From: Rebecca billardiae RCC1528
Lineage: Eukaryota > Protista > Haptophyta
Length of the DNA: 64,000 nt
Direction: 5' to 3'
NCBI GenBank assembly: GCA_965240325.2
Contig: OZ251224.1
Location: 1,736,001-1,800,000, forward strand
A model generated the notes under the pieces. That model was not told the DNA's origin. It saw only the letters and a program-made list of their open reading frames with translations, and made no database searches. Position 1 is the stretch's first letter. Each line of letters begins with the position of its first letter. The position numbers were made by a program, and so were the translations under genes. Of the stretch, positions 16,701-37,119 are shown piece after piece.

Positions 16701-19700
16701 TCAGACGCGTTGTGGTACCACCTGTGTCTCTGTGGGCGCGTTGCCATCGGCTGGTAGCGCTTCGGCTGTGAGCGCTTGCTGTGAGCCGCCAAATGTCCAA
16801 CGACGGCTTGGTGCGCGAGCTGCCGCGTCGCCGTCGGCTTGCAGCGCTCGCTGCGATCCGCCAAATCGGCTGAGGAGGCTGTCACGGCGTGTCGCAATCC
16901 TGCTGATCAAGACCGTTGGGCCTGCGAAAGCGTCTTCCATCTTGCGATTCCGGAGGTACATCACCAAGACCACCAACCAACCGAGGAGGCAACAGCACAC
17001 AAAGCCGATGGCGACGACGATGCCAACCTGCGCGCCGTAGGACAGCTGGGCACCCAGGAGGTTCGCCTCACCGGGAGGGGGCGACGACGGCGGCGCGGGT
17101 GGCGGCGAGGGTGGCGGCGGCGAGGTCGGCGAGGGCGGCGGCGGAGGGCTGGGCGGCGGGCTTGGCGGGGGTGGTGGGCTCGGCGGCGAGGGCGGCATGG
17201 GAGGCGGCTTGGGCGGCGAGGGCGGCGGAGAGGGCGGCGGTGGGGACGGTGGCGGCGCTGGAGGTGGCGAGGGCGGCGGTGAGGGCGGGCTCGGCGGCGG
17301 GCGGCTCGGCGGGCTCGGCGGGAGTGGTGGCGGCGAGAAGAAGATGCAGGAACCGTCGTTGTAGGTCGCCAGCGAGAAGAAGTTGCTCGCCGCGGGGGCA
17401 GTGCAGCCTCCGATCGAGCAGCTGCCACTGTCGACCGTGGCGATCGGGTCATAGTTGTCCGCGAGGGAGTTGGTGCAGCCCGGGAAGTCATAGGAGCAGC
17501 CGTCGAGCGCCGTGGCCGTGGAGTCATAGTTTGCGGCGGCGGTGTCCGTGCAGCCTGTGTATGAGCACGGCCCGTCGAGCTGCGCGTCGCTGCGGTAGTT
17601 GACGGCGGAGGTGTCGCGGCAGCCGGTGATCAGGAAGATGCACGAGTCGTCGGGCGTGTTGGCTGTCGAGTCGTAGTTGCTCGCGATCGTGGAGAGGCAG
17701 CCGAGGAAGATGCAGGTCGAGAGGTCGAGCTCGGTGACGCTCGAGTCGTAGTTGGTCGCGCTGAGCACGCTGCACCCAACGACCGGCGCAACACAGCTGC
17801 CATCGTCCTCCGTTGCGGCCGAGTCGTAGTTGGATGCGCTCTCGTCGGTGCAGCCTGACCGGATGCAGCTGCCATCGTCCCCGTCCGCGCTCGAGTCGTA
17901 GTTCTCAGAGCCAGAGTCGGTGCAGCCGAGCACGGGGCACACGCAGCTGCCGTCGTCGACGGTCGCGCTCGAGTCGTAGCCGCTGCACGACGGGCTCGTG
18001 CAGCCGAGGTACACGCAGCTGCCGTCGTCCGACTGCGCGCCCGAGTCAAAGTTGGGCGCCGTCACATCGGTGCACCCCGTCGAGGGCAGCGTGCACGAGC
18101 CGTCGCTCGCCGTCGCCGTGGAGTCATAGTTGAACGCCGCGGTGTTGGTGCAGCCGAAGTAGACGCAGCCGCCGTCCACGTCGGCATTCGAGTCGAAGTT
18201 CGCGGCGGCCGGGTCGAGGCAGCCGACCGTGGCGATGTCGACGCAGTCGTTCGACTCGAGCGTCGCGCGCGAGTTGTAGTTGGACGCGAGCGAGTTCATG
18301 CAGCCGGAGATCACGCACGAGCCGTCGTCCGCCTCGGCCGCCGAGTCGAAGTTGTCCGCAGTCGAGTCCGTGCAGCCGAGGAGGGGGATGACGCACGAGC
18401 CAGCATCGTTCACGCCCGCGGACGAGTCATAGTTGGTCGCGGACGTGTCGAGGCAGCCCGCGTACACGCACGATCCGTCGGTCGTGTCCGCGGTCGAGAG
18501 GAAGTTCATCGCCGCCGAGTCGGTGCAGCCAAACCGCGGGTAGATGCAGCTGCCGTCGTTGTCGGTCGCGGTCGAGTCGTAGTTGGGCGCGAACGTGAGG
18601 GTGCAGCCGCGGAACACACAGCTGCCGTCGTCGCTGGTCGCGCCGCTGGCGAAGTTGGCGGCGCCCGATGCGGTGCAGCCGGGGATCACCCCAGTGCACG
18701 AGCCGTCGTTCTGGGTGGCGGCGGAGTCGTAGTTGTCGGCGCCCGCGAGCGTGCAGCCATTGATGACGCACGAGCCGTCGCTCACGGTAGCAGAGGCGTC
18801 GAAGTTGCTCGCGCGCGAGTCGAGGCAGCCGTTGACGAGGAAGATGCAGCTGCCGTCGTTGAACGTGGCGCCGGAGTTGTAGTTGTCCGCGTTCGTGTTC
18901 GTGCAGCCGCCGAGCACGCACGAGCCGTCGTCGGTGACCGCAGACGGGTTGAAGTTGTCCGCGCCCGAGTCCGTGCAGCCCCCCGCGGGCGCGACGCACG
19001 AGCCATCGTTCGTGTTGGCGCTCGAGTCGTAGTTGGTCGCAGTTGGGTCGACGCAGCCGGGCACAGTGGACACGCAGCCGCCGTCGCGCGTCGCGAGCGA
19101 GAGGTAGTTGAGCGCCGTCGAGTCCGTGCAGCCGATGATGTCGTACTCGCAAATCGCGCCGCCCGCCGCCGTCGCGTTCGAGTTGTAGTTGGCCGCGAGC
19201 GGGTCGATGCAGCCGAAGATCTCGTCGACGCACGAGCCGTCGTCGACGGTGGCGATCGGGTCGTAGTTGGTCGCGTTGTTGCGCGTGCACCCGCTGAACG
19301 CGCAGCTCTCGTCGTCCACCGTCGCGTCGGGGTCGAAGTTGTCCGCGGCGGAGTTGACGCAGCCCTGCACCGGGCACACGGGCGCCACGTACGTGTCCTG
19401 CAGCTCAGAGTTGCCGCACGTGGCCAGCCGGCGCCGCCCGCCGTCGTCGGCGCTCGTCGACCAGATCGAAATCACCTCAGCGGCACGCGCGGCGTACGCC
19501 TCAGCCGCCGAGCTCAGCTCGCCGCTCGACGGCCCGTTCCCGCCGAGCGCGGTGCGGACGGCGATGAAGGTGGCAGCGTCGGCGAGCTCTGACAGGATGT
19601 GCGCGCTCGAGTCGGTGCACAGCGCGCCCACGTGCTGGAGGACGGCGGTCTGGACGGCGCTGGCGGACGAGTAGCCGGCGAGCAGCGCGGAGGCGCGCGA

Positions 19701-22469
19701 GAGCAGCTCGCTCAGCAGCACCGACGCCTGGATCACCGGCAGCGCCTCGGCGTCACCGGCGAAATAGCGGCGGAGCGGGCTGTAGCCGAACACGTCGATC
19801 GCGTGCGAGAAGTTGAAGCAGCGGCCGAGCTGCAGGTGCGCGCCCACGCCCATGTGCAGCGAGAGCGTGGTGATCGGCGAGAGGGCGACCGAGTAGAGCG
19901 GCGCGCGCAGCGTGAACGAGAGCGAGTCGCCGCTGATGGCGTCGCGGCACTGCGCGCTCGGCTCGACCACCAGCGTCGCCGAGCGGTCGGTGTAGAGCAG
20001 GTCGTACTTGCCATTCACCGCGCTCACCGCCGTGCCGACCACCTCGCCGCTCGACTTGACCGCCTTCACGACGCACTGCCGCCGCTGCGCGACCGACTGC
20101 ACGACGCCCGTCGCGCGCTCGAACTGGCAGCTCCCGTCATTGAAGTTGGCCTTGGGGTCGTAGTTGATCGCGCTGGTCGCCGTGCACCCCTTGTACTCGC
20201 ACGTGCTGCCGAGCGTCGCGCGCGGCTTGTAGTTGGCCGCCGTCGCGTCCTGGCAGCCCCACACGTGCGGCACGCACGAGCCGTCGTCCACCGCGGCGAA
20301 CGGGTCGTAGTTCTGCGCCTTCAGGTCGGTGCAGCCCCGGCGCACGCACGTCGACGGCACGAACTCGGTCGTGGCGAGCGAGTTGAAGTTGACCGCGCGC
20401 GGGTCCGTGCAGCCGAAGACGGGATACACGCAGCTGCCGTCGTCCACGTTGGCTGTCGCGTCGTAGTTGGTCGCCTTGCGCGCCGTGCAGCCCCAGTGGG
20501 CGGCGATGCAGCCGCGGTCGCGCGTGGCGTCCGAGCGGAAGTTGAGCGCCGTCGAGTCCGTGCAGCCCAGGATGGGGTACGTGCAGCTGCCGTCGTCAAC
20601 CGTCGCCGTCGGGTCGTAGTTGTCCGCGAGCGAGGCGATGCAGCCGGGGTGTGCGAGGGTGCACGAGCCGTCGTCCAGAGCTGCGGCGGGCGAGAAGTTG
20701 AGCGCAGCCGAGTCGGTGCAGCCGCGCACGGGGAACGTGCAGCTCCCGTCGTCGACGGTGGCCGAGGAGTCGAAGTTGGCGGCGCGTGGCGACATGCACC
20801 CGCTCGCCGCGAAGACGCAGTTCTGCCTCACGTTGGCGTCGGGCCGGTAGTTGATGGCCGAGGGGTCGGTGCAGCCATACACGGCCGCGGTGCACGAGCC
20901 TCTGCGCAGCGTGTTGGCAGTCGGGTTGTAGTTGAGCGCCGTCGGGTCGGTGCAGCCCTCGACGACGGAGACGCAGCTGCCGTCGTCCACGTTGGCGCGC
21001 GAGTTGTAGTTCATTGCGGCCGGATCGCGGCACCCCGGCCGCGCGAGCGTGCACGGCGTCGTCGCCAGCTGGATGGTGGCGGTGGACACGTAGTTGAGCG
21101 CACTCGGGTTGCGGCAGCCCTCGACGAGCGGGATGCACACGTCGACCGAGCTCTCCGCGTCGATGGCGCTCGAGTCGTAGTTGAGGCTGCCGGGGACGTT
21201 GCACTTGAGCGTCGCGAAAGTGCACGAGCCGTCGTACATGGTGGCCGCCGAGTTGTAGTTGGACGCGGACGGCGCCGTGCAGCCCTGCAGCGCGTACGCG
21301 CACAGGCCGTTGTCCACGCCTGCATCCGAGCGGAAGTTGACGGCCGTCGAGTCGGTGCAGCCGCGCACGGGGTACACGCAGCTGCCGTCGTTCGCCGTGG
21401 CCGCCGGGTCGTAGTTGCTCGCAAGCTGCACGTTGCATCCAAAGCGCACGCACGGCCCCGCCTGCGTGGCGAGCGAGTCGTAGTTGTCCGCCACGCTGTC
21501 CGTGCAGCCGGCGCGCGCAAAGGTGCACGAGCCTGGCAGGAAGCGGTTGGCGCGCGAGTCGAAGTTCTCCGCGGCCGTGTTGGTGCAGCCGGGGTACACG
21601 CAGCTGCCGTCGTCCCGCGAGATGCTCGAGTCGTAGTTCTGCGCCGACGTGTCCGTACATCCGCGGCAGCTCGTGAAGTCGCAGCTGGTGAAGACGGTGG
21701 CTGACGGGTTGTAGTCGCATGCGCTCGAGACCGTGCAGCCGCGCACGTCGAGCACGCACGAGCCGTCGTCGACGGTGGCGCACGGGTCGTGGTTGAACGC
21801 CGCGGAGTCCGTGCATCCGAGCGTGTACGGCAGGCAGCTGTCGTACGTGTCGGCGAGCGAGTTGTAGTCCGGCGCCCACGAGTCGGTGCACCCAAACACG
21901 GCGTACAGGCACTCGATGTCGCCTTGCGTCGTCGCGTCGGGTCGGAAGTTGATGGCCGCCGAGTCGGTGCAACCGAAGACGGGATATTGGCAGCACGGCG
22001 GAGTGCGGCACTCGTAAGCGAGCGAATCGTAGTTCAGCGCGATCGGGTCCGTGCATCCGGCCCGGGGCGGTGGCGGCGCGGGCGGCTGCGAGGGCGGGCT
22101 CGGGTTTGGCGAGGGCGAGGGCGGCGGCGGCGGCGGCAGCGGCGGCAGCGGCGGGAGCGACGGTGGCGGCGGCGAAGGCGGAGGCGGCGACGGTGGTGGT
22201 GGCAAAGGCGGAGGGGGCGACGCGATTGGTGGTAGAGAAATCACTCCTACCACCGAGCTCGCGGCGAAGCTGAACACGGGCGTGCTGGGAACGATCGACA
22301 GCGGAAACGACAGCAGCTCGCGCGGCACGAGGGGCGGCTTGTCAGGCAGCGCCTGCGGCACGGAGAGAGGTTGTGCCATCTCGAGGCCATCGTATAGCCG
22401 CTCGCCGGGCGTGCCGTGCGCGCACGCCGTCAGCAGCGCGGCGACCACGATGCGCGCCGTGCGCTGCAT
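16701..22469 (-). CDS. Giant type I membrane surface protein with 52 Cys/Asp-rich GCTDxxAxNYDxxAxxDDGSC repeats and SPPP stalks
   Basis: Signal peptide (MQRTARIVVAALLTACAHG), Pro-rich segment, 25 repeats, unique ~240-aa middle, 27 repeats, Pro-rich stalk, TM with CCC and a cytosolic tail. Single exon. Confidence 0.88.
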   Translation of the reverse strand: MQRTARIVVAALLTACAHGTPGERLYDGLEMAQPLSVPQALPDKPPLVPRELLSFPLSIVPSTPVFSFAASSVVGVISLPPIASPPPPLPPPPSPPPPSPPPPSLPPLPPLPPPPPPSPSPNPSPPSQPPAPPPPRAGCTDPIALNYDSLAYECRTPPCCQYPVFGCTDSAAINFRPDATTQGDIECLYAVFGCTDSWAPDYNSLADTYDSCLPYTLGCTDSAAFNHDPCATVDDGSCVLDVRGCTVSSACDYNPSATVFTSCDFTSCRGCTDTSAQNYDSSISRDDGSCVYPGCTNTAAENFDSRANRFLPGSCTFARAGCTDSVADNYDSLATQAGPCVRFGCNVQLASNYDPAATANDGSCVYPVRGCTDSTAVNFRSDAGVDNGLCAYALQGCTAPSASNYNSAATMYDGSCTFATLKCNVPGSLNYDSSAIDAESSVDVCIPLVEGCRNPSALNYVSTATIQLATTPCTLARPGCRDPAAMNYNSRANVDDGSCVSVVEGCTDPTALNYNPTANTLRRGSCTAAVYGCTDPSAINYRPDANVRQNCVFAASGCMSPRAANFDSSATVDDGSCTFPVRGCTDSAALNFSPAAALDDGSCTLAHPGCIASLADNYDPTATVDDGSCTYPILGCTDSTALNFRSDATRDRGCIAAHWGCTARKATNYDATANVDDGSCVYPVFGCTDPRAVNFNSLATTEFVPSTCVRRGCTDLKAQNYDPFAAVDDGSCVPHVWGCQDATAANYKPRATLGSTCEYKGCTATSAINYDPKANFNDGSCQFERATGVVQSVAQRRQCVVKAVKSSGEVVGTAVSAVNGKYDLLYTDRSATLVVEPSAQCRDAISGDSLSFTLRAPLYSVALSPITTLSLHMGVGAHLQLGRCFNFSHAIDVFGYSPLRRYFAGDAEALPVIQASVLLSELLSRASALLAGYSSASAVQTAVLQHVGALCTDSSAHILSELADAATFIAVRTALGGNGPSSGELSSAAEAYAARAAEVISIWSTSADDGGRRRLATCGNSELQDTYVAPVCPVQGCVNSAADNFDPDATVDDESCAFSGCTRNNATNYDPIATVDDGSCVDEIFGCIDPLAANYNSNATAAGGAICEYDIIGCTDSTALNYLSLATRDGGCVSTVPGCVDPTATNYDSSANTNDGSCVAPAGGCTDSGADNFNPSAVTDDGSCVLGGCTNTNADNYNSGATFNDGSCIFLVNGCLDSRASNFDASATVSDGSCVINGCTLAGADNYDSAATQNDGSCTGVIPGCTASGAANFASGATSDDGSCVFRGCTLTFAPNYDSTATDNDGSCIYPRFGCTDSAAMNFLSTADTTDGSCVYAGCLDTSATNYDSSAGVNDAGSCVIPLLGCTDSTADNFDSAAEADDGSCVISGCMNSLASNYNSRATLESNDCVDIATVGCLDPAAANFDSNADVDGGCVYFGCTNTAAFNYDSTATASDGSCTLPSTGCTDVTAPNFDSGAQSDDGSCVYLGCTSPSCSGYDSSATVDDGSCVCPVLGCTDSGSENYDSSADGDDGSCIRSGCTDESASNYDSAATEDDGSCVAPVVGCSVLSATNYDSSVTELDLSTCIFLGCLSTIASNYDSTANTPDDSCIFLITGCRDTSAVNYRSDAQLDGPCSYTGCTDTAAANYDSTATALDGCSYDFPGCTNSLADNYDPIATVDSGSCSIGGCTAPAASNFFSLATYNDGSCIFFSPPPLPPSPPSRPPPSPPSPPPSPPPAPPPSPPPPSPPPSPPKPPPMPPSPPSPPPPPSPPPSPPPPPSPTSPPPPSPPPAPPSSPPPGEANLLGAQLSYGAQVGIVVAIGFVCCCLLGWLVVLVMYLRNRKMEDAFAGPTVLISRIATRRDSLLSRFGGSQRALQADGDAAARAPSRRWTFGGSQQALTAEALPADGNAPTETQVVPQRV

Positions 22470-23033
22470 CCTGTGGGCAGTTGGCGGATGGGAAATGGCC
22501 AGGGTGGGGCGTGCTCGGCGCCCAACTTTTTTGCTGCGCCGCGCCTCAATTCGGTTACAGCAATCTAGAAGGAAATCAGAGCATCTGCATGCAAGAAGTT
22601 GGTCACTGGAGTACCCGGCACGTATTTCATCCCATGAGCCGATTATGATTTTGTGAAACTTTCTGATCTTATGTGCGAAGGGGTGATCACGCGCAGGGCG
22701 CGCCGATCGGCGCCGGTCCAGCAGGTGTGCATCAACAAGCCAACTGGCGCGCGATGGGTGATGAACCGTCTGTGATTGGTCCACCCAGCCACGTCGCTAA
22801 AAGCTCTATAGAAACGGCGTCTCAACGGCTTATGATACGAACTCAGCTATTTTTAACTTATAATATGTAACGGGCAATCCCAGCTTGGGGGGATTAAGGA
22901 TTTGAGATTTCCGATTTCCCCTCCGGCCAACGGCCCTGGCTTTTCGTCCGCGGCAAATCGGCAAGACATCGCAAGGGGCCGCGGTCGGGCGGGTCGAGCC
23001 TGTTTGCCCCCGGGCTCAGCTCAGCAGCTGGAC

Positions 23034-23828
23034 ATGTCATTCAACCTGGGCGAGGTAGTCAAGGCACTCTTCGTCTCCGGACACAGTGAGCGCACGATCA
23101 CCCCCACGACGCTCAAGACCATGTACGGGGAACTCAAGTCCAGGCGCGTGCTGCTCGGCTTCGTGCGGTATGTCGCGTTCCCCACCGGGCGCACGCTTGC
23201 TTGGTGCGTGTCCCACCTGCCCACCGCGTGGCAAGCGCGCTGTCAGAAGGCAATCCCTCTGCTGTACGTGATACGCGCTCACGATGGCCCGCGTGTCGGC
23301 ACCCCCATCCCGGAGGACTTTGAGCTCACGTTCCTCACGGGCGAGAAGACAACATCCGGCCAGCTGCTCTCGCAGCACGAGCTCGTGGTGGTCAACTGCG
23401 GCAGCCTCACCTGAGGCCCCTTCCGCCTGTCCCTCCGGTCGCTCGAGGACTCTCTCCTCGGAGCGGAGGGTCAGGCGGGGAAGGGCGCGCGCCTTGTCCA
23501 CCTGTACATCCGAGAGGCCCACCCGACAGATGAGTGGCGCATGGGCTACAACGAGCCCTCTGATGAGCACGCTGGCGGGCTGTGCTATCGCCAACCGCGC
23601 ACGATGAGCGAGCGTATCGCCATTGCCAACGATATGGTCGAGCAGCTCGGCGTCAGGGGCGAAATCGTGTGCGACAGCATGCAGAATGCTGCGGACACGT
23701 GGTTCGCCGCATGCCCCGACCGCCTGTACGTCCTCTCGCGTGGGCGGGTGGTGTACAAGGGCGGGCGCGGGCCCTTCTTCTACGACCCTGACGAGATGCT
23801 CGCTTTCCTCGAGTCGACGGAGCGCTGA
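23034..23828 (+). CDS. Iodothyronine deiodinase family selenoprotein (Sec UGA at 23412-23414), 264 aa
   Basis: One continuous frame reads VVNCGSLT-U-GPF...LVHLYIREAHPTDEW...QPRTMSERIAIA...CDSMQNAA...PDRLYVL...YKGGRGPFFY, matching deiodinase FGSxTUPxF, YIxEAHPxDGW and ERLY...YxGGxGPxxY. SECIS downstream. Confidence 0.92.
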
Positions 23829-23939
23829 AGTGGGCGCGCATCGCCTTGGTCCCCCCGCTCACCCGACGAGGCTGACCCCGAGGGCCATTGCCCGTTGCCG
23901 CCCTGATGGAGGAGAGTGTCCGCGTTGTGCACTGCTGCC

Positions 23940-24024
23940 TCACGTGCCCCATGACTTCCCTGTGGGTAACTCGCGGCCGAGATCCCAACCGCAGCCCCAG
24001 GGCACGACACACATCTGCGCGTGA
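23940..24024 (+). promoter_or_regulatory. Eukaryotic SECIS element in the deiodinase 3' UTR
   Basis: Lower stem TCACGTGC/GCGCGTGA; ATGAC (23951)...CGAC (24005) quartet; upper stem TTCCCTGTGGGT/GCCCCAGGGCA; apical AA (23968-69) plus mini-stem CTCG/CGAG. Confidence 0.82.
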
Positions 24025-25010
24025 AGCCGAAGCAGGCGGCAACTTAGAACTTTCACGGTGGCATACGGTATTATTATTTGCATCGCACTATTAATATAAT
24101 ATATATATCGTAATATATTATTGTCCGCATCTTATTGCTATTATAATTATTATTGTCAGTATTTAATTATAGTTACAAACTAAGACTGGCTACTGCCCAC
24201 TGCCCGGCTCAGACACTACAGGTGGATACGGGTGATCTGGACAGTGGCCGACCCAACTCACGCGCGGAGGCCTTCCTGGGAGCATTGGGGTCGAAGGGGC
24301 GCCAGGGACGGACTTCAGGGGGTCCCTGGAGTTCCGCCGCAGCGCGCTTTCTGCGCTGCGGGCCCGTCTCCGCGCGTGGCGGCCGCAATGGCACTGTCCA
24401 ATTAGCCCCTGGCACTGGCTGAGGCATGGGAATCGAGCTCAGAGACGCGCGCGCGGAGGAAAAGCGTGTGCAGCGGCTCGGACGGTTGCTCTGGGACCTA
24501 CCCACGCCAGCGCAACCGCGCCTTGCCTCGGAGTCCGCCCTTCCTGAGTCCGCGCACGCGCCTTGCGGCTTGAAACGCTGGCGTTCGCCCTTGTGCGCGA
24601 GACTCACGAAACAAGGCGAAGGCGGCGAGAAGCGCGACCTGGCGCGTGCGCAGACGACGTCTCACGACCAGGTGAGTTCAGCGAACATCGTGCGCCGTCG
24701 TGGCGACCCGCCAGTGGGCGCTCGTGCTCGTTCGCCCACGAGCCCTCGCCACGAGGCCCGCCGCCCGCTGAGTGTCCAGATAGCCCCTGTGTCCAGTTAG
24801 CCCGTATCCACCTGTACTGCATGATCCTAGATCGAGATGACGAGGCACCCTGCGCCGGTTGGGGCCCGCGTTGCCACTGCTGGCGGCCGCGGCGCTGGTG
24901 CCTGGTGGCCGCGGAGCCGCCCACCGCTGTCCGCTTCATCAAGTAGCGCCGGGCCGCGCGTGACACTGGTCAACATCACTGAATGACTGATGATACATAT
25001 TACATGTAGT

Positions 25011-26336
25011 TCACAGGCCGCGTCGCTCTTGCACCTCGCCTGTCGCCTCCGCCTCGCGCAGTCTGTACCCCGTGACGAGCTGCCACATACACACCTGCGC
25101 GAAGGCCTCCTTGGTGAGCACGAGGCCCGTGTCCGGCGGAAGCTTGCCGTCCTCGTCCTCATCGTCGAGCCCGAGCGTGGTGCCCTTGATGACAAAGTCG
25201 ACGAGCATCTTCATCGCGTCGGCAACCTCTGGCTGCACGCTCGCCGTGAGCTTCTGGACCTCGCCGGGCGCGAGCGACTCGATGTACGCGCCGATGGAGC
25301 TCTGCCGCTTCGCCTTGAGCGCGAACGACTCGGCGTTTGCCCGCTCGAGCTCGCCGCGCAGGCTCGCGACGCGCTCGCGCAGGCCAGCGACGTATGCCTG
25401 GGCATCCATCTCGAGCTCGGCGCCGTCCGAGAGCTCGACCTTGAGCGTGCCGCTCACGTTGGGCTGCGGCAGCTCGTCCTTGGCGGCGGGCAGCAGCGAA
25501 GGCACCGGCTCCGGCTCCACGTCCGGGCCGAGCACCGCCTTGAACTCCTCCCACGACACGCGCCGGTCCTTGTCCGAGTCGAACACGTCGAGGAACTCGC
25601 GCACGTCGCCCTGCGAGACGCCGCCGGAGACGAGCGTGCCGTTCACGCGCACGACGGGGCCCTTGATCTGCTCGAGGAGCACGCGCGCCTCGCCCGCGTC
25701 AATGTCGCCCGACCCGTCCTTGTCAGCCGTGTCGAACGCCTTGCGCAGCTCGGCCTCTGTGTTGTGCTTGATCTTGAGCACCTGCTTGAACTGCAGCACG
25801 TACTCGGCGTTGCGGAAGAGGTAGCCCGTCATCTGCAGCTGGTAGATGAGCGCGGTGAACTTCTCGAGGGTCGTGGAGTACTGCTGCGAGAACTGCGGGG
25901 GCAGGCTGCCCAACAGGCTCATCACCGCGGACTGCATCGCCTCGACGACCAGTGGCGACGAGTTGCGGATGAAGCGGAGGATCACATCGGGCGGCTCATC
26001 CTTGGTGATCATCCGGTAGAGCTCCTCGGCCGCGCCCGTCGAGCCCGCCTCGAGCTCACGCACGCGCTGCTGTAGAAGCTCCATGTCCTTCGGGCTCAGC
26101 AGCCCGCTCGCCGGCTGATCGAGCTCATCCGGTTCGTCGTCGTCCTGCGGCGATGCGGACATCACGTGGGCCGGAGCCCGCGCGCGCCGGAATGTACGCG
26201 CAACCCGCGTGGCGGGCAGCAGCTGCGAGGAGGCGAGACGCGCGACTGCAACCGACTGCACGGCGTGCAGCGATGCCATCGACAGCACCACCACGAGTGC
26301 GGCGGAAGGGAGCCAGCAGGCCAGCCGCACGGCCAT
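25011..26336 (-). CDS. Plastid-targeted DUF760 protein with two inserted EF-hands
   Basis: Signal+transit; DUF760-like motifs AMQSAVMSLLGSLP...LQMTGYLFRNAEY and WQLVTGYRLREAE; EF loops DKDGSGDIDAGE and DSDKDRRVSWEE. Confidence 0.82.
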   Translation of the reverse strand: MAVRLACWLPSAALVVVLSMASLHAVQSVAVARLASSQLLPATRVARTFRRARAPAHVMSASPQDDDEPDELDQPASGLLSPKDMELLQQRVRELEAGSTGAAEELYRMITKDEPPDVILRFIRNSSPLVVEAMQSAVMSLLGSLPPQFSQQYSTTLEKFTALIYQLQMTGYLFRNAEYVLQFKQVLKIKHNTEAELRKAFDTADKDGSGDIDAGEARVLLEQIKGPVVRVNGTLVSGGVSQGDVREFLDVFDSDKDRRVSWEEFKAVLGPDVEPEPVPSLLPAAKDELPQPNVSGTLKVELSDGAELEMDAQAYVAGLRERVASLRGELERANAESFALKAKRQSSIGAYIESLAPGEVQKLTASVQPEVADAMKMLVDFVIKGTTLGLDDEDEDGKLPPDTGLVLTKEAFAQVCMWQLVTGYRLREAEATGEVQERRGL

Positions 26337-27813
26337 CGTTGCTGGGGCTGCCGGCAGCCGCCGCCACGTCAGCAGTCTCAAGTTCATGCTCGGAAGTCCC
26401 ACAGCGGGACTTCTCCGGGCCTGCGGTACTCGCCAGTGAAAACCTCCCGCGCCCCTCGAGATCATACGGAGTTGGCGGCGAGATCGCGCTCTTGCGCGGG
26501 CGGCGGGCGGGAGCGCGCGCCGGCGCTCGCTCGCGCGCTCGCTGCCCGCAGCGCGCGCGTCAGGTCGTCGCGAGCGCTTGCGCACCGGCGCTAGGGCGCG
26601 TGCCACCTGCGCACGCCGCTGGTTCGCGCCTGCGCGCTCTGCTCCGCCGCTGCGGCGCTTGCGAGCGCTCGCCGTGTCCTGCGCTGGTTCCGGGCCGCGT
26701 CGAAAGCCTGGTTGTGCGGCCAGCCAAGTGTGGCTTTTGCGGCTTGGCGCGCGAGCGCGCGACGCAGCGGATGGCGCGTGTGAGCCGTCCAGCCAGCGTC
26801 ACTCGCCTCGTGCGCCGCGTGCCGACCGCGAGACCCAGATTCGACGCCGAGCGCTGCTCGGTCCGACGGTGAGACGCCAGACGGGTCGGCGCTCTGCATC
26901 GCAGAGCCGCGCGTGGTCGCGCAGAAGAGGCCGCGCGTGGCCGGCGCGGCCGCTGTGTGCCGTGGTCTAGACGTCAATCGCGTCCTCAGTTGCTTGCCTT
27001 GCCCAAGCGGTCACGCCGCACTCACGAGTGGGCGACTTGACCTGACTCTGCGTGCCGGGCCGTATCTCGTGCCGCCAGAAGCGGGCTCGAACAAATCCAT
27101 CCTACTCCATTGGTAGACGGCTTCAAGAACTCGATGGTTATGGTCTGGTCGCGCGCTGATGACACGTACACGATCTCCGTGAGCGCAGCTCTTCCACGCA
27201 AGGGCTTATGTGGCTACGATCGGTGACGGCGTGACCTCGAGACACCTTCCGGAATCCACCTCACGTGTCACGCGCTGTGTACGGGCAGAAGATGAGTGAC
27301 CGCTTGGGCGAGGCAAGCGTTCTCACCTACTGCGGACGCAATTGACGTCTAGACCACGGCACACAGCGGCCGCGCCGGCCACGCGCGGCCTCTTCTGCGC
27401 GACCACGCGCGGCTCTGCGATGCAGAGCGCCGACCCGTCTCACCGTCGGACCGAGCAGCGCTCGGCGTCGAATCTGGGTCTCGCGGTCGGCACGCGGCGC
27501 ACGAGGCGAGTGACGCTGGCTGGACGGCTCACACGCGCCATCCGCTGCGTCGCGCGCTCGCGCGCCAAGCCGCAAACGCCACACTTGGCTGGCCGCACAA
27601 CCAGGCTTTCGACGCGGCCCGGAACCAGCGCAGGACACGGCGAGCGCTCGCAAGCGCCGCAGCGGCGGAGCAGAGCGCGCAGGCGCGAACCAGCGGCGTG
27701 CGCAGGTGGCACGCGCCCTAGCGCCGGTGCGCAAGCGCTCGCGACGACCTGACGCGCGCGCTGCGGGCAGCGAGCGCGCGAGCGAGCGCCGGCGCGCGCT
27801 CCCGCCCGCCGCC

Positions 27814-31686: not shown

Positions 31687-34578
31687 TCATGGTGGCTGCT
31701 GCCGCCTGCCTGGCCCCTCGCTCATGGCACAACCGAGTGCGCGCTGCTCAGCCGGGAGCCGGGGCCAGGGCCAGCCCCCACGTCCGTCGCGCTCGCAGGC
31801 GCGGACTGGTGCACGGCGGCGGCCATCGTCGACTCCGAGTCGGTGTACTCGGGCGGCACCGCCGATGCCAGGCCTGCGAAGCGGGTGCAGGGGCGGATGG
31901 CGCGTGGGGCGGGGCGCGGGGGGGCGCGTCGGTCCGAGCGCAGCGAGCACGCGGTGCGTCACCGCCAACCCGCTCTCACCTGCTGCGCCGTCGGTCGCTC
32001 CCTCCGCGGCCGCGAACGCTGCCGACACGGGCGGCAACGGGAGCAGGTCGATGGGTGGGCCGGGCGGCGGCAGCGCGCGCGGCCACCAGTTCACGCGGTC
32101 GAGCAGCCCCATCGCGGCGGGCACGAGCACCGTGCGCACGAGCAGCGCGTCAATCAGCACCGACGCCGTGAGCAGGAAGGCGAGCTCGTTCAGCGAGGTG
32201 GAGGAGGAGAAGAGGAGCGCGCCGAAGGCGATGGCCATGATCATGCCCGCCGCGGTGATCAGCGGCCCCGAGCTCTCCAGCCCCGCGGCGACCGACTCGC
32301 GCTCGCTCAGCCCCTGCTGCCGGAACTCGAGGATCCGGCCGAGCAGGTAGATGTCGTAGTCGCACGCCAGCCCGACCATGATCGGGAGGGAGAGGATGGG
32401 CGTCGACCAGGAGAGGTTGCCCGCGTGCGGCACGGAGGGCCAGTGCGTCCACGCGAGCGCGCCGCGGCCGTACACGAGCCACGCGCAGCCCATCGAGAGC
32501 ACGAGCGAGCCGCTGATCGTGAGCACCGCGCGCAGCGGCACCACCGCCGAGCGGAACGCCGCGCCGAACAGCACGAACACGACCGAGAGCGTGATGCCCA
32601 CCATCAGCGGGAAGTACTCGTACACCAGCGCCACCGAGTCGTTCATCGCGATGGCGCCGCCGACCAGCCCGAACGTGTCGGTGCCGCCCGCCTCGGCCTC
32701 CACCTGCGCGAACGCCGCGCGCACCGCCTTGAGCCACGCCGTCGCGCGCGCGGAGAAGGCGTCGTACGAGAGCGCGAGGGACACGTAGGTCGCGCTCGCG
32801 TTCACGCCCGCGTCCGCGTCGCCGTTGGTGAACTGTCGCCACGCAAGCCTGGCCTCAGTGCACACCGGCCGGCGCGCGAGCTGCTCGAGCGCGGCGCACG
32901 CGGCGGCGTCCGCGTGCAGCGCCGCGTGCAGCAGCTCGAACGGCACGTCCGTCGCGCCCGACATCATCACGCCCGTCACGTTCACGCTCTCGGTCGCGTT
33001 GGCGAGCTCGAGCGCGCGCCGCACGTACGCCCTCGAGCGGTTGAAGAAGTCTGCCGACTCGACCACGCCGTCCGCCGGCTGGATGAGCACGTTGAAGGGG
33101 AAGAGCGCGCCGGAGCCGAACGCGTCGACCATCTCGGTGTACGCGATCGACGCCTCCGCGTCGCGCGGCATCGTCTGCTGCTGCGACTGCGACGTCTCGA
33201 TCGCCGCCACCTGCAGCGCGCTCGGCAGGAGCGCGGCCACGAACGCGACGAGCACGAGCCAGCGGTACTCGAGCGCGAGCGTGCTCAGCCGCGCCCAGAA
33301 GGTGCCCGGCGCGGCGCGCTCGGGGAGGCTGCCCACGCGCGTGGGGTCCTTGCGCACGAGCGAGGCCGACATGCCCTGCTCGTCCGCTGCCGCCGCCGCC
33401 ATCTCGGAGTCTGCGCCGCCGTCAGCAGCGCCGCCGCCGCCGGCCGCGGCGGCGCCAGCGTCCGCCGGCCGGCGGCCGCAGCGGCAGCACAGCTCGATGC
33501 GCGAGAAGAAGGCGGGGAAGGCGAGGATGAGCGCGGGCAGCAGCGTCAGGTTCACCGCGACGGACACGACGATCGTCAGCCCCGTCGCGAGCCCCAGGCT
33601 CGAGATCAGCCCGATCGGAAAGAAGAGCAGACCGAAGAAGCAGAGGGCGAGCGTCACGCCCGACACGAGCACGGTGTGGCCCGCGTAGCACAGCGCGGCC
33701 GCGAGCGCGGCGGCGGTGTCCGGCGCGGCGCCGTGCGCGAGGATCTCCTCGCGGAAGCGCGAGAGCAGGAAGAGCGAGTAGTCGATGCTCGTCGCGAGCG
33801 TCGCCGAGAGCATCATCGACGGCGCGAAGTTGGCCACGAAGATGAGCTCGGAGATGGGCCACATCAAGAAGTACGAGGTGCCGGCCGTCGCGCCGATGCA
33901 CGCGAGGGTGATGAGCGCGAGGCGCCAGGAGCGCACGATGTACAGGAACGGGATGAACGCGAAGGGCACCACCTTGGGGTGCACCTGCTCCACGTCGTGC
34001 GTCACGCCGTCCAGCGCCGCCTGGAGGAAGTAGGGCTCGCCCGCGAGCTTCACGTCGAGCCCGGACGGCGCGCGCGCGTGCACGTGCTCGCGCAGCCCGG
34101 TCGAGAGCGCGTCCGAGGCGTTGGTGGGCAGGGACACGACGATGAGCGAGGCCGTGCTGCGCTCGGGCGCGCTCGGCTCGTTCACGAACGGGCCGGTGAG
34201 CTCGGGCAGCCCGCGCTCCTCAAACGTGTAGTACCCGACCATCGAGGCGTTCGCGTCGAGCCCGGCGCCGCGAGCCCAGTGGGCGAGGTCGTGGGTCAGG
34301 GCGCGCAGCTCAGAGCCGAGCACCGCGGCCCCGTCCACGCGCCGGACGACCGCCGTCACCTTCACGTCCGTCTGGGGGAAGAGCTCCTCGAACGCGCGCG
34401 AGGCGTTGTACCCGAGCGACGCCTTCGGGACGGAGAAGTCAATGGCGGTGTTCGCCGTGAAGCGCGAGGCAAAGATCGCGCCGAGGACGGTGAGCACGCC
34501 CCAGGTGCCGATCAGGGCGTATCGAAACCGAGTGAGCGCCGCGACGGCCACGCCGTTCGGAGGCTGCTGAGGGCGCAT
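31687..34578 (-). CDS. MMPL/RND-family multi-pass membrane transporter (C-terminus uncertain)
   Basis: Two repeats of TM bundles with IDYSLFLLSRFREE, AGHTVLVSGVT, GLACDYDIYLLGRILE, ITAAGMIMAIAF and LIDALLVRTVLVPA...NWWP. Confidence 0.88.
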   Translation of the reverse strand: MRPQQPPNGVAVAALTRFRYALIGTWGVLTVLGAIFASRFTANTAIDFSVPKASLGYNASRAFEELFPQTDVKVTAVVRRVDGAAVLGSELRALTHDLAHWARGAGLDANASMVGYYTFEERGLPELTGPFVNEPSAPERSTASLIVVSLPTNASDALSTGLREHVHARAPSGLDVKLAGEPYFLQAALDGVTHDVEQVHPKVVPFAFIPFLYIVRSWRLALITLACIGATAGTSYFLMWPISELIFVANFAPSMMLSATLATSIDYSLFLLSRFREEILAHGAAPDTAAALAAALCYAGHTVLVSGVTLALCFFGLLFFPIGLISSLGLATGLTIVVSVAVNLTLLPALILAFPAFFSRIELCCRCGRRPADAGAAAAGGGGAADGGADSEMAAAAADEQGMSASLVRKDPTRVGSLPERAAPGTFWARLSTLALEYRWLVLVAFVAALLPSALQVAAIETSQSQQQTMPRDAEASIAYTEMVDAFGSGALFPFNVLIQPADGVVESADFFNRSRAYVRRALELANATESVNVTGVMMSGATDVPFELLHAALHADAAACAALEQLARRPVCTEARLAWRQFTNGDADAGVNASATYVSLALSYDAFSARATAWLKAVRAAFAQVEAEAGGTDTFGLVGGAIAMNDSVALVYEYFPLMVGITLSVVFVLFGAAFRSAVVPLRAVLTISGSLVLSMGCAWLVYGRGALAWTHWPSVPHAGNLSWSTPILSLPIMVGLACDYDIYLLGRILEFRQQGLSERESVAAGLESSGPLITAAGMIMAIAFGALLFSSSTSLNELAFLLTASVLIDALLVRTVLVPAAMGLLDRVNWWPRALPPPGPPIDLLPLPPVSAAFAAAEGATDGAAGESGLAVTHRVLAALGPTRPPAPRPTRHPPLHPLRRPGIGGAARVHRLGVDDGRRRAPVRACERDGRGGWPWPRLPAEQRALGCAMSEGPGRRQQPP

Positions 34579-34858: not shown

Positions 34859-37119
34859 ATGGACGCGACGCCACCCAAGCGCCGCGGCCGCGCCGGCGTG
34901 CTGCTCGTGGCGCTATGCGCCGTGGCAGCCATCTACTTCACCGCGACCACACTCGTCTTCTCCGGCATCCGGCCACACGGCGCGGACTCAGCCGGCGTCG
35001 AGCAGCGCGCGTTTCCTCGCATACACCGCGCCGCGGCCTCTGCCGGCGCCGAGGATGGGCCCCACGAGCGCGAGGCCCGCACAGAGGCGACGGTGCGCGC
35101 CGCGGAGATCGTGGAGACGCCTGGCGGCCCGCCAGCCTCCCTCCCCGCCGAACCCGCCGAATGCCTCGACGACGATGAGCACTGCCCGGGCTGGGCCGTG
35201 CGCGGCGAGTGCTGGTCGAACGAGGATTTCATGCGCACGTCGTGCCGCCGGTCCTGCGGCACGTGCGCCCCGCCCTCGCGGCTGGAGGCCTGCCCGACCG
35301 CCTCCACCGACGTCTCGCGCCGCGACCCGTCGTCCGAAGTCAACCTCGAGATCATTAACGAGCAGATGCGCAACTTGGAGCTGCTCTGGGTGCAGCCGGA
35401 CGGCGCGGAGAAGCGCTACTGGGTGATCGACGCGTACGGCACGTTCCAGACGTCGACGGGGAAGGGCGACATCTGGCGACTGCGGATGAAGACGGGCGAC
35501 CTCGCCGCCGAGATCCTCGTCACCGCGAGCTCTGGCCACCAGATCCACGTCGTGCGCCCGTGCCTGCCCGAGCCGCAGCGCGCGGCCGTCGAGTACGCAG
35601 AGCGATTGGACGTCGAGCTCGAGGGCGGTGCGGACGCGCTCGCGGCGTGCGACCCGTGGGCGCAGCTGAGCACGCGCGAGCCAGTGCCCGGCATGCACGT
35701 CGCGTGCGTGCTCCGGCCCTCGGCGCGCGCGCCGCCCGGCTCGCACGCCACGCTGGCCGTGTACGCGGAGGCGTGGACGCGGCACACACGGCGCAGCGCG
35801 AGCGTGCTGCCCACGGCGGTGCTCGCGCTGCCCGAGGCCGTGGAGACGGGCGAGGGCGTCGCGCGGCTCGTGATGGACCGGCTCCAGGTCGTCCGTCGCG
35901 GCCCGCTCCACCAGCCGCCCGCCCTCTTCTCGCCCGCGGGCGTGCGGCTCGAGTCGTGGGCGCAGGTGTCGCGGCACGCGTGCGTGATCGTGCAGGAGGG
36001 CGGGCAGTGGATCTGGCCGCCCGTCGAGGTGGGCCACACGCGCACGCTGTGGATCGACGACGGCGTGGCGCCGCGGCACGTGACGCTGGAGACGCGCAGC
36101 CTCCGCCCGATCGCCTTCTCCTCGCCCGACTTCATCCGCGAGGAGGAGGCCAGCCTGATCGTCACGCGCGCGGACGGGCACATGTTCAGGTCGGGCGTCG
36201 CGCTCAAGACGGCCGACGCGGGGCACAAGGACGCCGAGTACCGCACGTCGTCGCAGTGGTCGTTCCCGCTGTGGGAGGACGCGATCATGCCGCTCAACCG
36301 GCGCGTGCAGCAGCTCACGCGCGTGCCGGTCTCGCAGGCGGAGCAGATCCAGGTGCTCCGGTACAACCACATGGAGCACTACTCTGCACAGTGCGCGCGC
36401 GCGCCCCGCGCGCGCGCCGCGCGTCCCGGCGCGCGCGCGCGGCGCGAGCTCTGGCCGACGCGCGTGCGGTGGCGTGCCCCCGCGATGCCACCTTGCCTCG
36501 TATCGCAGCCACGACTTCTTCGACCCGGGAGACTACAACGGCCGCGATCGCGAGGGCGGATATGCGAGCAACCGCATGGCGACGGTGAGCGCGCGCGCAC
36601 ACTGCGCCGCCCCGCTTGGCCCGCGGCCCGCCCGCCTCGCTCGCCCGACGGCGCGGACTCGCGAGGGGCGCGTGCTCACGCTCTTCCCCCTGCACGCCGC
36701 GCCGCCCGACGCTCGCGCGTGCGCCCCCGCGCTGCCCACGCGAGCAGGTCTTCTTCTACCTCAACCAGCCCGTCCGCGGCGGGCAGACTGCGTTCCCACG
36801 CGCGGGCAAGCTGCCGCAGCCGAGCGACTTCCTCGACTGCACGATCGGCCTGCCCGTCGATCCGCAGTACAAGGCGGTGCTGGTCTTCTACTCCATGCTG
36901 CCGAATGGCGAGTTCGACCACTGCAGCCTGCATGCCGGCTGCGACGTCCACGAGGGCGTGAAATGGTCGGCGAACTACTGGCTGTGGAATACGCCGCGGC
37001 GAGGGAACCCCAAAGCGCAGGCGATCACTGGCGATCTGAAAGAGGACTTTGCGGCCCCTGCTAGTGCAGGAAGTGAGGAGACCGTCAGCGCCGCAAGGGG
37101 GGCGCACGGCAGCGAATGA
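34859..37119 (+). CDS. Type II membrane prolyl 4-hydroxylase with ShKT and VHL-beta-like domains (introns 36391-36508, 36585-36747)
   Basis: The spliced product has QVLRY...YSAHHDFF (HxD), NRMATVFFYLN...GGQTAFP and SLHAGCDVHEGVKWSANYW. ShKT CLDDDEHCPGWAVRGEC...CRRSCGTC. Confidence 0.88.

Follow-up and report, generated by a model that had tools for sequence, protein, structure and literature searches.

A single TGA separates two open reading frames on the forward strand of the 64-kb stretch of Rebecca billardiae DNA analysed here (the window). The locus raises the question of whether the two frames are one gene in which UGA is read as selenocysteine (Sec) and, if so, what reaction the enzyme would catalyse. 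A preliminary description had placed the two pieces, one ending at 23414 and the other starting at 23541, in one frame with a single TGA between them. This was borne out: TGA 23412–23414, in the context NCGSLT-stop-GPF, is the sole internal stop of the frame 23034–23828. The features of the gene are as follows.

23034–23828, + strand: intronless CDS for a predicted deiodinase-like selenoprotein of 264 residues, from ATG to the TGA stop at 23826–23828
23034–23411, + strand: N-terminal half; a clade-specific region (residues 1 to about 80), then a peroxiredoxin-like N-module and strand beta1
23412–23414, + strand: in-frame UGA, putative Sec127 at the catalytic position (S124-L-T126-U127-G-P-F; codon 127 of 264)
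23505–23537, + strand: Y158-I-R-E161-A-H163-P-T-D-E-W168, equivalent to Dio3 Tyr197/Glu200/His202/Trp207; predicted proton relay and start of the omega loop (roles from PMC7506546, PMC11592359)
23538–23597, + strand: omega loop of 18 residues with Cys184, ending in Q187-P188; Pro where Dio3 has His219
23712–23723, + strand: C227-P228-D229-R230; clade-specific Cys at the position of Dio3 Tyr257, before the Sec-flanking Pro (Dio1 Pro213/Dio3 Phe258)
23940–24024, + strand: predicted type-II SECIS in the 3'UTR, from our own scan, with an architecture common to three orthologs
24069–24180, + strand: probable 3'-end/polyadenylation region; AT-rich tract with low-complexity repeats

The GC content at third codon positions (GC3) was 0.84 before the UGA, 0.83 in the 42 codons from there to the next ATG and 0.84 beyond, compared with 0.58 upstream and 0.68 downstream of the CDS. 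Three independent Logan assemblies of this organism (ERR14847148/49/52) carry the gene stretch without a difference, TGA included, and the TGA is therefore not an assembly error. A T/C difference between the window and the Logan contig L004 was seen at 22985, upstream of the start codon. In the Logan assemblies a public gene caller splits the gene into products of 126 and 95 aa, as had been anticipated for standard callers, and the read-through frame thus rescues for annotation a gene that callers break in two.

For local alignment, X stood for the UGA codon in the read-through protein; profile and homolog searches took each half separately. The C-terminal half matched Pfam T4_deiodinase (PF00837) with an E-value of 5.6e-20 (72.1 bits against a gathering cut-off of 27), and the mouse Dio3 and Dio2 structures with E-values of 2–3e-11. 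The motifs used to recognise the PF00837 family are present: S-x-T-U/C, the Y-I-x-E-A-H-x(4)-W insertion, P-[DE]-R and G-x-G-P. The motifs IREAHPTDEW, PDRLY and YKGGRGPFFY, previously noted downstream of the TGA, all lie in frame, PDRLY being preceded by a cysteine (CPDRLY). With NCBIfam NF038285, the C-terminal half alone scored 90.6 against a cut-off of 250. The N-terminal half alone matched no Pfam or NCBIfam model and a word-index search with it returned only itself; its nearest ESM Atlas clusters were T4_deiodinase fragments (score 0.95). From residue 83 or so, the read-through protein aligns across the UGA with 41 full-length homologs, in which the residue at the Sec127 position is Cys in 31, Trp in 7, Ser in 2 and Arg in 1. 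The tryptophans are probably UGA codons read under another code. The predominance of Cys agrees with the earlier placement of the TGA at the deiodinase catalytic site. A metagenome scan gave one distant locus only.

Three orthologs (L001, L002 and L006) are 55–61% identical to the window protein in the C-terminal half (56–62% after the UGA) and 36–43% in the N-terminal half, with start codons in register. Each has UGA at the same codon, within G-S-Y-T-U-G-P-F, and on either side of it the third codon position is the one that differs most between the window gene and the orthologs. L001 is an intronless 1.2-kb contig, probably a transcript. L002 (1881–2019, 139 nt) and L006 (2870–2978, 109 nt) carry a phase-2 GT-AG intron whose 3' end is one base short of the UGA; splicing therefore retains the codon. 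In a fifth member of the clade, L009 (821–1748), the same intron is followed by Cys in place of the UGA, giving S-Y-T-C-L-P-Y after splicing; the YIREAH strand is deleted, and this is possibly a degenerate or non-catalytic copy. The five members formed one clade (support 99/92) in a tree of 126 columns, with the sister group not resolved, and did not group with the His219-type (animal-like) sequences. The phase-2 intron before the Sec codon in L002, L006 and L009 (1177–1369 in the last) is missing from the window gene, by intron loss or because this is a retroposed copy. When unspliced, the frame of these three contigs reads T-C at the Sec site because the intron donor is GTGC.

A core-plus-helix scan gave exactly one SECIS match in each 3'UTR: 23951–24008 in the window, 886–932 in L001, 2628–2680 in L002 and 3511–3617 in L006. 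All four elements belong to type II and have a helix I and a helix II of 10 pairs. In the window copy the core is formed by AUGAC (23951–23955) and CGAC (24005–24008), helix I by 23940–23947 and 24017–24024, and an unpaired AA (23968–23969) and a mini-stem complete the element. The helix sequences differ among the four while pairing is kept, the first pair after the core being U-A, G-U, U-A and G-C. The apical AA occurs in the window copy only; the loops of L001, L002 and L006 read CCC, UCAU and AU, and standard SECIS patterns could miss the ortholog elements. Relaxed thresholds were chosen after the matches had been seen, and the figure relied on is the background of the original looser scan, 0.07 matches per 250 nt in the window, at which matches in 4/4 UTRs would arise by chance with a probability of about 2e-5 if independent. 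A strict AUGA_AA_GA scan gave 2 matches in 128 kb (both strands) and 2 in 500 shuffles of the UTR. The Rfam SECIS models did not match the window, and the free-energy z-score of the window element taken alone was unremarkable (-0.4 to -1.0). The preliminary description had placed a canonical SECIS about 110 nt past the stop. The position and the type II fold stand (111 nt to helix I, 122 nt to the core); "canonical" was slightly overstated, as CGAC in the 3' core does not fit the KGAW consensus of SECISearch3 (PMC3753652) and Rfam gave no match. Two ortholog elements share the C-C mismatch after the core seen in the window copy, and that of L006 has an apical mini-stem of about 70 nt.

The gene almost certainly encodes a selenoprotein, judging from its sequence and those of its orthologs, because the UGA is kept in the orthologs, each of the four UTRs has one SECIS, the helices are unrelated in sequence, and the SECIS scan gave no match in the Cys-form relative L009. 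Three features by which eukaryotic selenoproteins are recognised were found: coding conservation on both sides of the UGA, Cys in homologs, and a 3'UTR SECIS with a UGAN/NGAN core, a helix II of about 10 bp and an unpaired apical AA. Very probably, then, Sec is inserted at UGA127. Haptophytes are reported to possess the Sec machinery (PMC6627142); no tRNA was found in the 64-kb window. Together with the PF00837 match, these observations uphold the earlier proposal of a deiodinase-family selenoprotein with a Sec-UGA and a SECIS.

Active-site residues were mapped by alignment to mouse Dio3, with roles taken from PMC7506546, PMC11592359 and PMC9141512. The window protein keeps Dio3 Ser167, Thr169, Sec170, Tyr197, Glu200, His202, Trp207, Gln218, Arg225 and Arg260; Arg275 is kept (as Arg245) in the window copy only and is Gln in all three orthologs. 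Like vertebrate DIO1–3 (PDB 4TR3, 9H48), it has the thioredoxin fold with the D-insertion, S-x-T-U, the Y/E/H/W relay and loop residues, and a 3'UTR SECIS. It resembles Dio1 in having Pro at the Phe258 position, which in Dio1 makes the substrate cleft wider (PMC11592359). In contrast to the vertebrate enzymes, it has U-G-P-F in place of U-P-[PS]-F, and Tyr257 is replaced by Cys. His219 is replaced by Pro188, as in all four proteins and in 242/268 mostly microbial homologs; this change need not abolish deiodination, since human DIO1 H174A remains active (PMC9141512). The omega loop is 18 residues long, compared with 13 in most homologs and 10 in Dio3. The best 19-residue hydropathy value in the first 100 aa was 0.96 (1.3–1.8 in the orthologs; 2.0–2.3 in the His219-type sequences P0142 and P0199), and by this measure no clear N-terminal transmembrane helix was found; the values of the orthologs leave room for an amphipathic or weak anchor. 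An AlphaFold model of the C-terminal half alone, built with 4 sequences, was too poor for use (pLDDT 44).

A distal Cys is found in all DIO isoforms and a proximal Cys in DIO1 and DIO3 (roles in PMC9141512). Both are absent here, with Leu/Tyr at the proximal position (Cys168) and no counterpart of the distal Cys239. The clade has three extra cysteines, at 184, 213 and 227. The Cys227 position is Cys in 5/5 clade members and in 0/267 other homologs, and by the alignment to Dio3 the residue should lie near Sec127, because Phe258 of Dio3 covers the Sec. As both animal recycling cysteines are missing, Cys227 is proposed as a candidate resolving Cys. Cys122, in the N-C-G-S motif, was ruled out for this role, being Leu/Ala in two orthologs.

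Our main reading, with a probability of roughly 0.5, is that the gene is functional, consists of a single exon and encodes a thioredoxin-fold selenoenzyme of the deiodinase-like family PF00837, a predicted dehalogenase. Reductive dehalogenation of some halo-aromatic, the route suggested in the preliminary description, is plausible and our best guess for the reaction, at about even odds. The 3'UTR SECIS would recode UGA127 to Sec, and the selenolate of Sec127 would attack the halogen of a halogenated aromatic, with protons delivered by Thr126, Glu161, Tyr158 and His163. The resulting Se-halide would then be reduced by a thiol, for which Cys227 is the candidate. The substrate would probably be an iodinated or brominated phenol, tyrosine or diaryl ether of algal or environmental origin, not necessarily a thyronine, and the protein is probably soluble or peripheral, not membrane-anchored. 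The neighbouring genes (a DUF760/EF-hand gene and a large repeat surface protein) give no pointer to halogen metabolism, and the residues kept in the window protein are common to hundreds of bacterial homologs. A narrower version, rather unlikely, gives this small and probably haptophyte clade a soluble, Sec-dependent dehalogenase that takes non-thyroid marine halo-aromatics as substrates and uses Cys227 to recycle its selenium. If true, it would reveal a recycling route not seen in animal deiodinases and the first non-animal substrate for the deiodinase family, and would give selenium a role in algal halogen cycling.

A real selenoprotein acting as a general, peroxiredoxin-like thiol/peroxide oxidoreductase is a tentative but serious alternative to the dehalogenase: the substrate reduced by Sec127 would be a peroxide, a disulfide or an oxidised halogen species (HOI/HOBr), with Cys227 or Cys213 as the resolving residue. 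The deiodinase fold carries a peroxiredoxin module (PMC11592359), a redox role has been proposed for bacterial deiodinase-like proteins (PMC1088965), and the three additional clade cysteines and the absence of His219 and of a membrane anchor would suit such an enzyme. However, the omega-loop insertion with E/H/W is retained and has even grown longer; in Dio3 this insertion serves to bind and protonate the halo-aromatic. Neither a CxxU nor a UxxC motif is present.

That the protein is a true iodothyronine deiodinase serving thyroid-hormone-like signals in the alga is improbable. Arg245 of the window copy does match the Arg275 carboxylate clamp of Dio3, and Dio3 E259/R260 are kept as D/R. Against this, the three orthologs carry Gln at the clamp, Cys replaces Tyr257, the loop exceeds that of Dio3 by 8 residues, the clade stands apart from the His219-type sequences in the tree, and a literature search, not exhaustive, turned up no report of thyronine signalling in haptophytes. 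The label algal iodothyronine deiodinase given in the preliminary description accordingly holds for family (PF00837) and catalytic residues, and fails in the animal DIO1–3 sense on the membrane anchor, His219 and the recycling cysteines. Least probable is that the UGA is a plain stop in a pseudogene or split gene, or is spliced out: formally, 15 in-frame GT..AG pairs would allow its removal, but any intron there would delete the conserved catalytic motif and the ortholog introns leave the codon in place, while the same UGA in three orthologs at 55–61% identity (one on an intronless contig), a SECIS in all four genes and uniform GC3 across the UGA speak against a stop.

The gene is no surprise, as Sec deiodinase-like proteins are already known from algae, Dictyostelium and bacteria, and it is not new in kind. 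DIO is one of 42 algal selenoprotein families, 80% in the Sec form (Jiang et al. 2020, PMC7539508); those genes, like the window gene, are deiodinase-family genes of eukaryotic algae with a Sec-UGA and a SECIS, and that study assayed no function. The Sec deiodinase homolog of the amoebozoan Dictyostelium discoideum (Lobanov et al. 2007, PMC2375036), compared by its published description, is likewise a non-animal eukaryotic member, and its SECIS is of type II. The mini-stem of that element is very long, as in L006. All Dictyostelium SECIS elements carry AAA (PMC2375036), whereas in the present clade the window copy alone has AA. The deiodinase-like proteins of bacteria (Zhang et al. 2005, PMC1088965; review PMC13188914), reported in Sec form from marine species and suggested to act as general redox enzymes (PMC1088965), belong to PF00837 with Sec or Cys at the same site, and most homologs outside the clade share Q-P (not Q-H), R-E-A-H and P-[DE]-R with the window protein. 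The bacterial proteins differ in having the SECIS in the coding region, UxxC as the listed motif, a 13-residue loop and no Cys before the Pro. A Symbiodinium transcript has also been annotated as a Sec deiodinase-like gene (PMC3329448). The marks that are the clade's own are the Cys before the Sec-flanking Pro, the longer substrate loop and the non-AA SECIS loops of the orthologs. A literature search that was not exhaustive turned up no substrate for any deiodinase-like protein of algae or bacteria. The most worthwhile lead is Cys227 of this clade and the substrate; an intronless, apparently anchor-less algal member is convenient to express and assay, and could show the role of the family before there were thyroid hormones, and whether selenium serves algae in the dehalogenation of organic compounds.

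Immediately after the gene, at 24219–24814, lies a MITE-like element with imperfect terminal inverted repeats starting CAGGTGGATACGGG; it is flanked by TA on both sides (Tc1/mariner-like) and is single copy in the window, and its left repeat is where the Logan contigs stop. Divergent to the deiodinase-like gene, 16701–22460 (- strand) encodes a membrane-anchored protein of about 1,900 aa in which two proline-rich stretches enclose dozens of copies of the repeat GCTDxxAxNYxxxAxxDDGSC. The DUF760/EF-hand gene lies at 25011–26390, its nearest named relative being from Pavlovales sp. CCMP2436 (50% identical, against 30–36% for stramenopiles), and this one gene thereby points to a haptophyte. Further along are an MMPL/RND-family transporter at 31687–34578 (- strand, E-value 2e-60) and a ShK-domain protein at 34859–36961 (+ strand).
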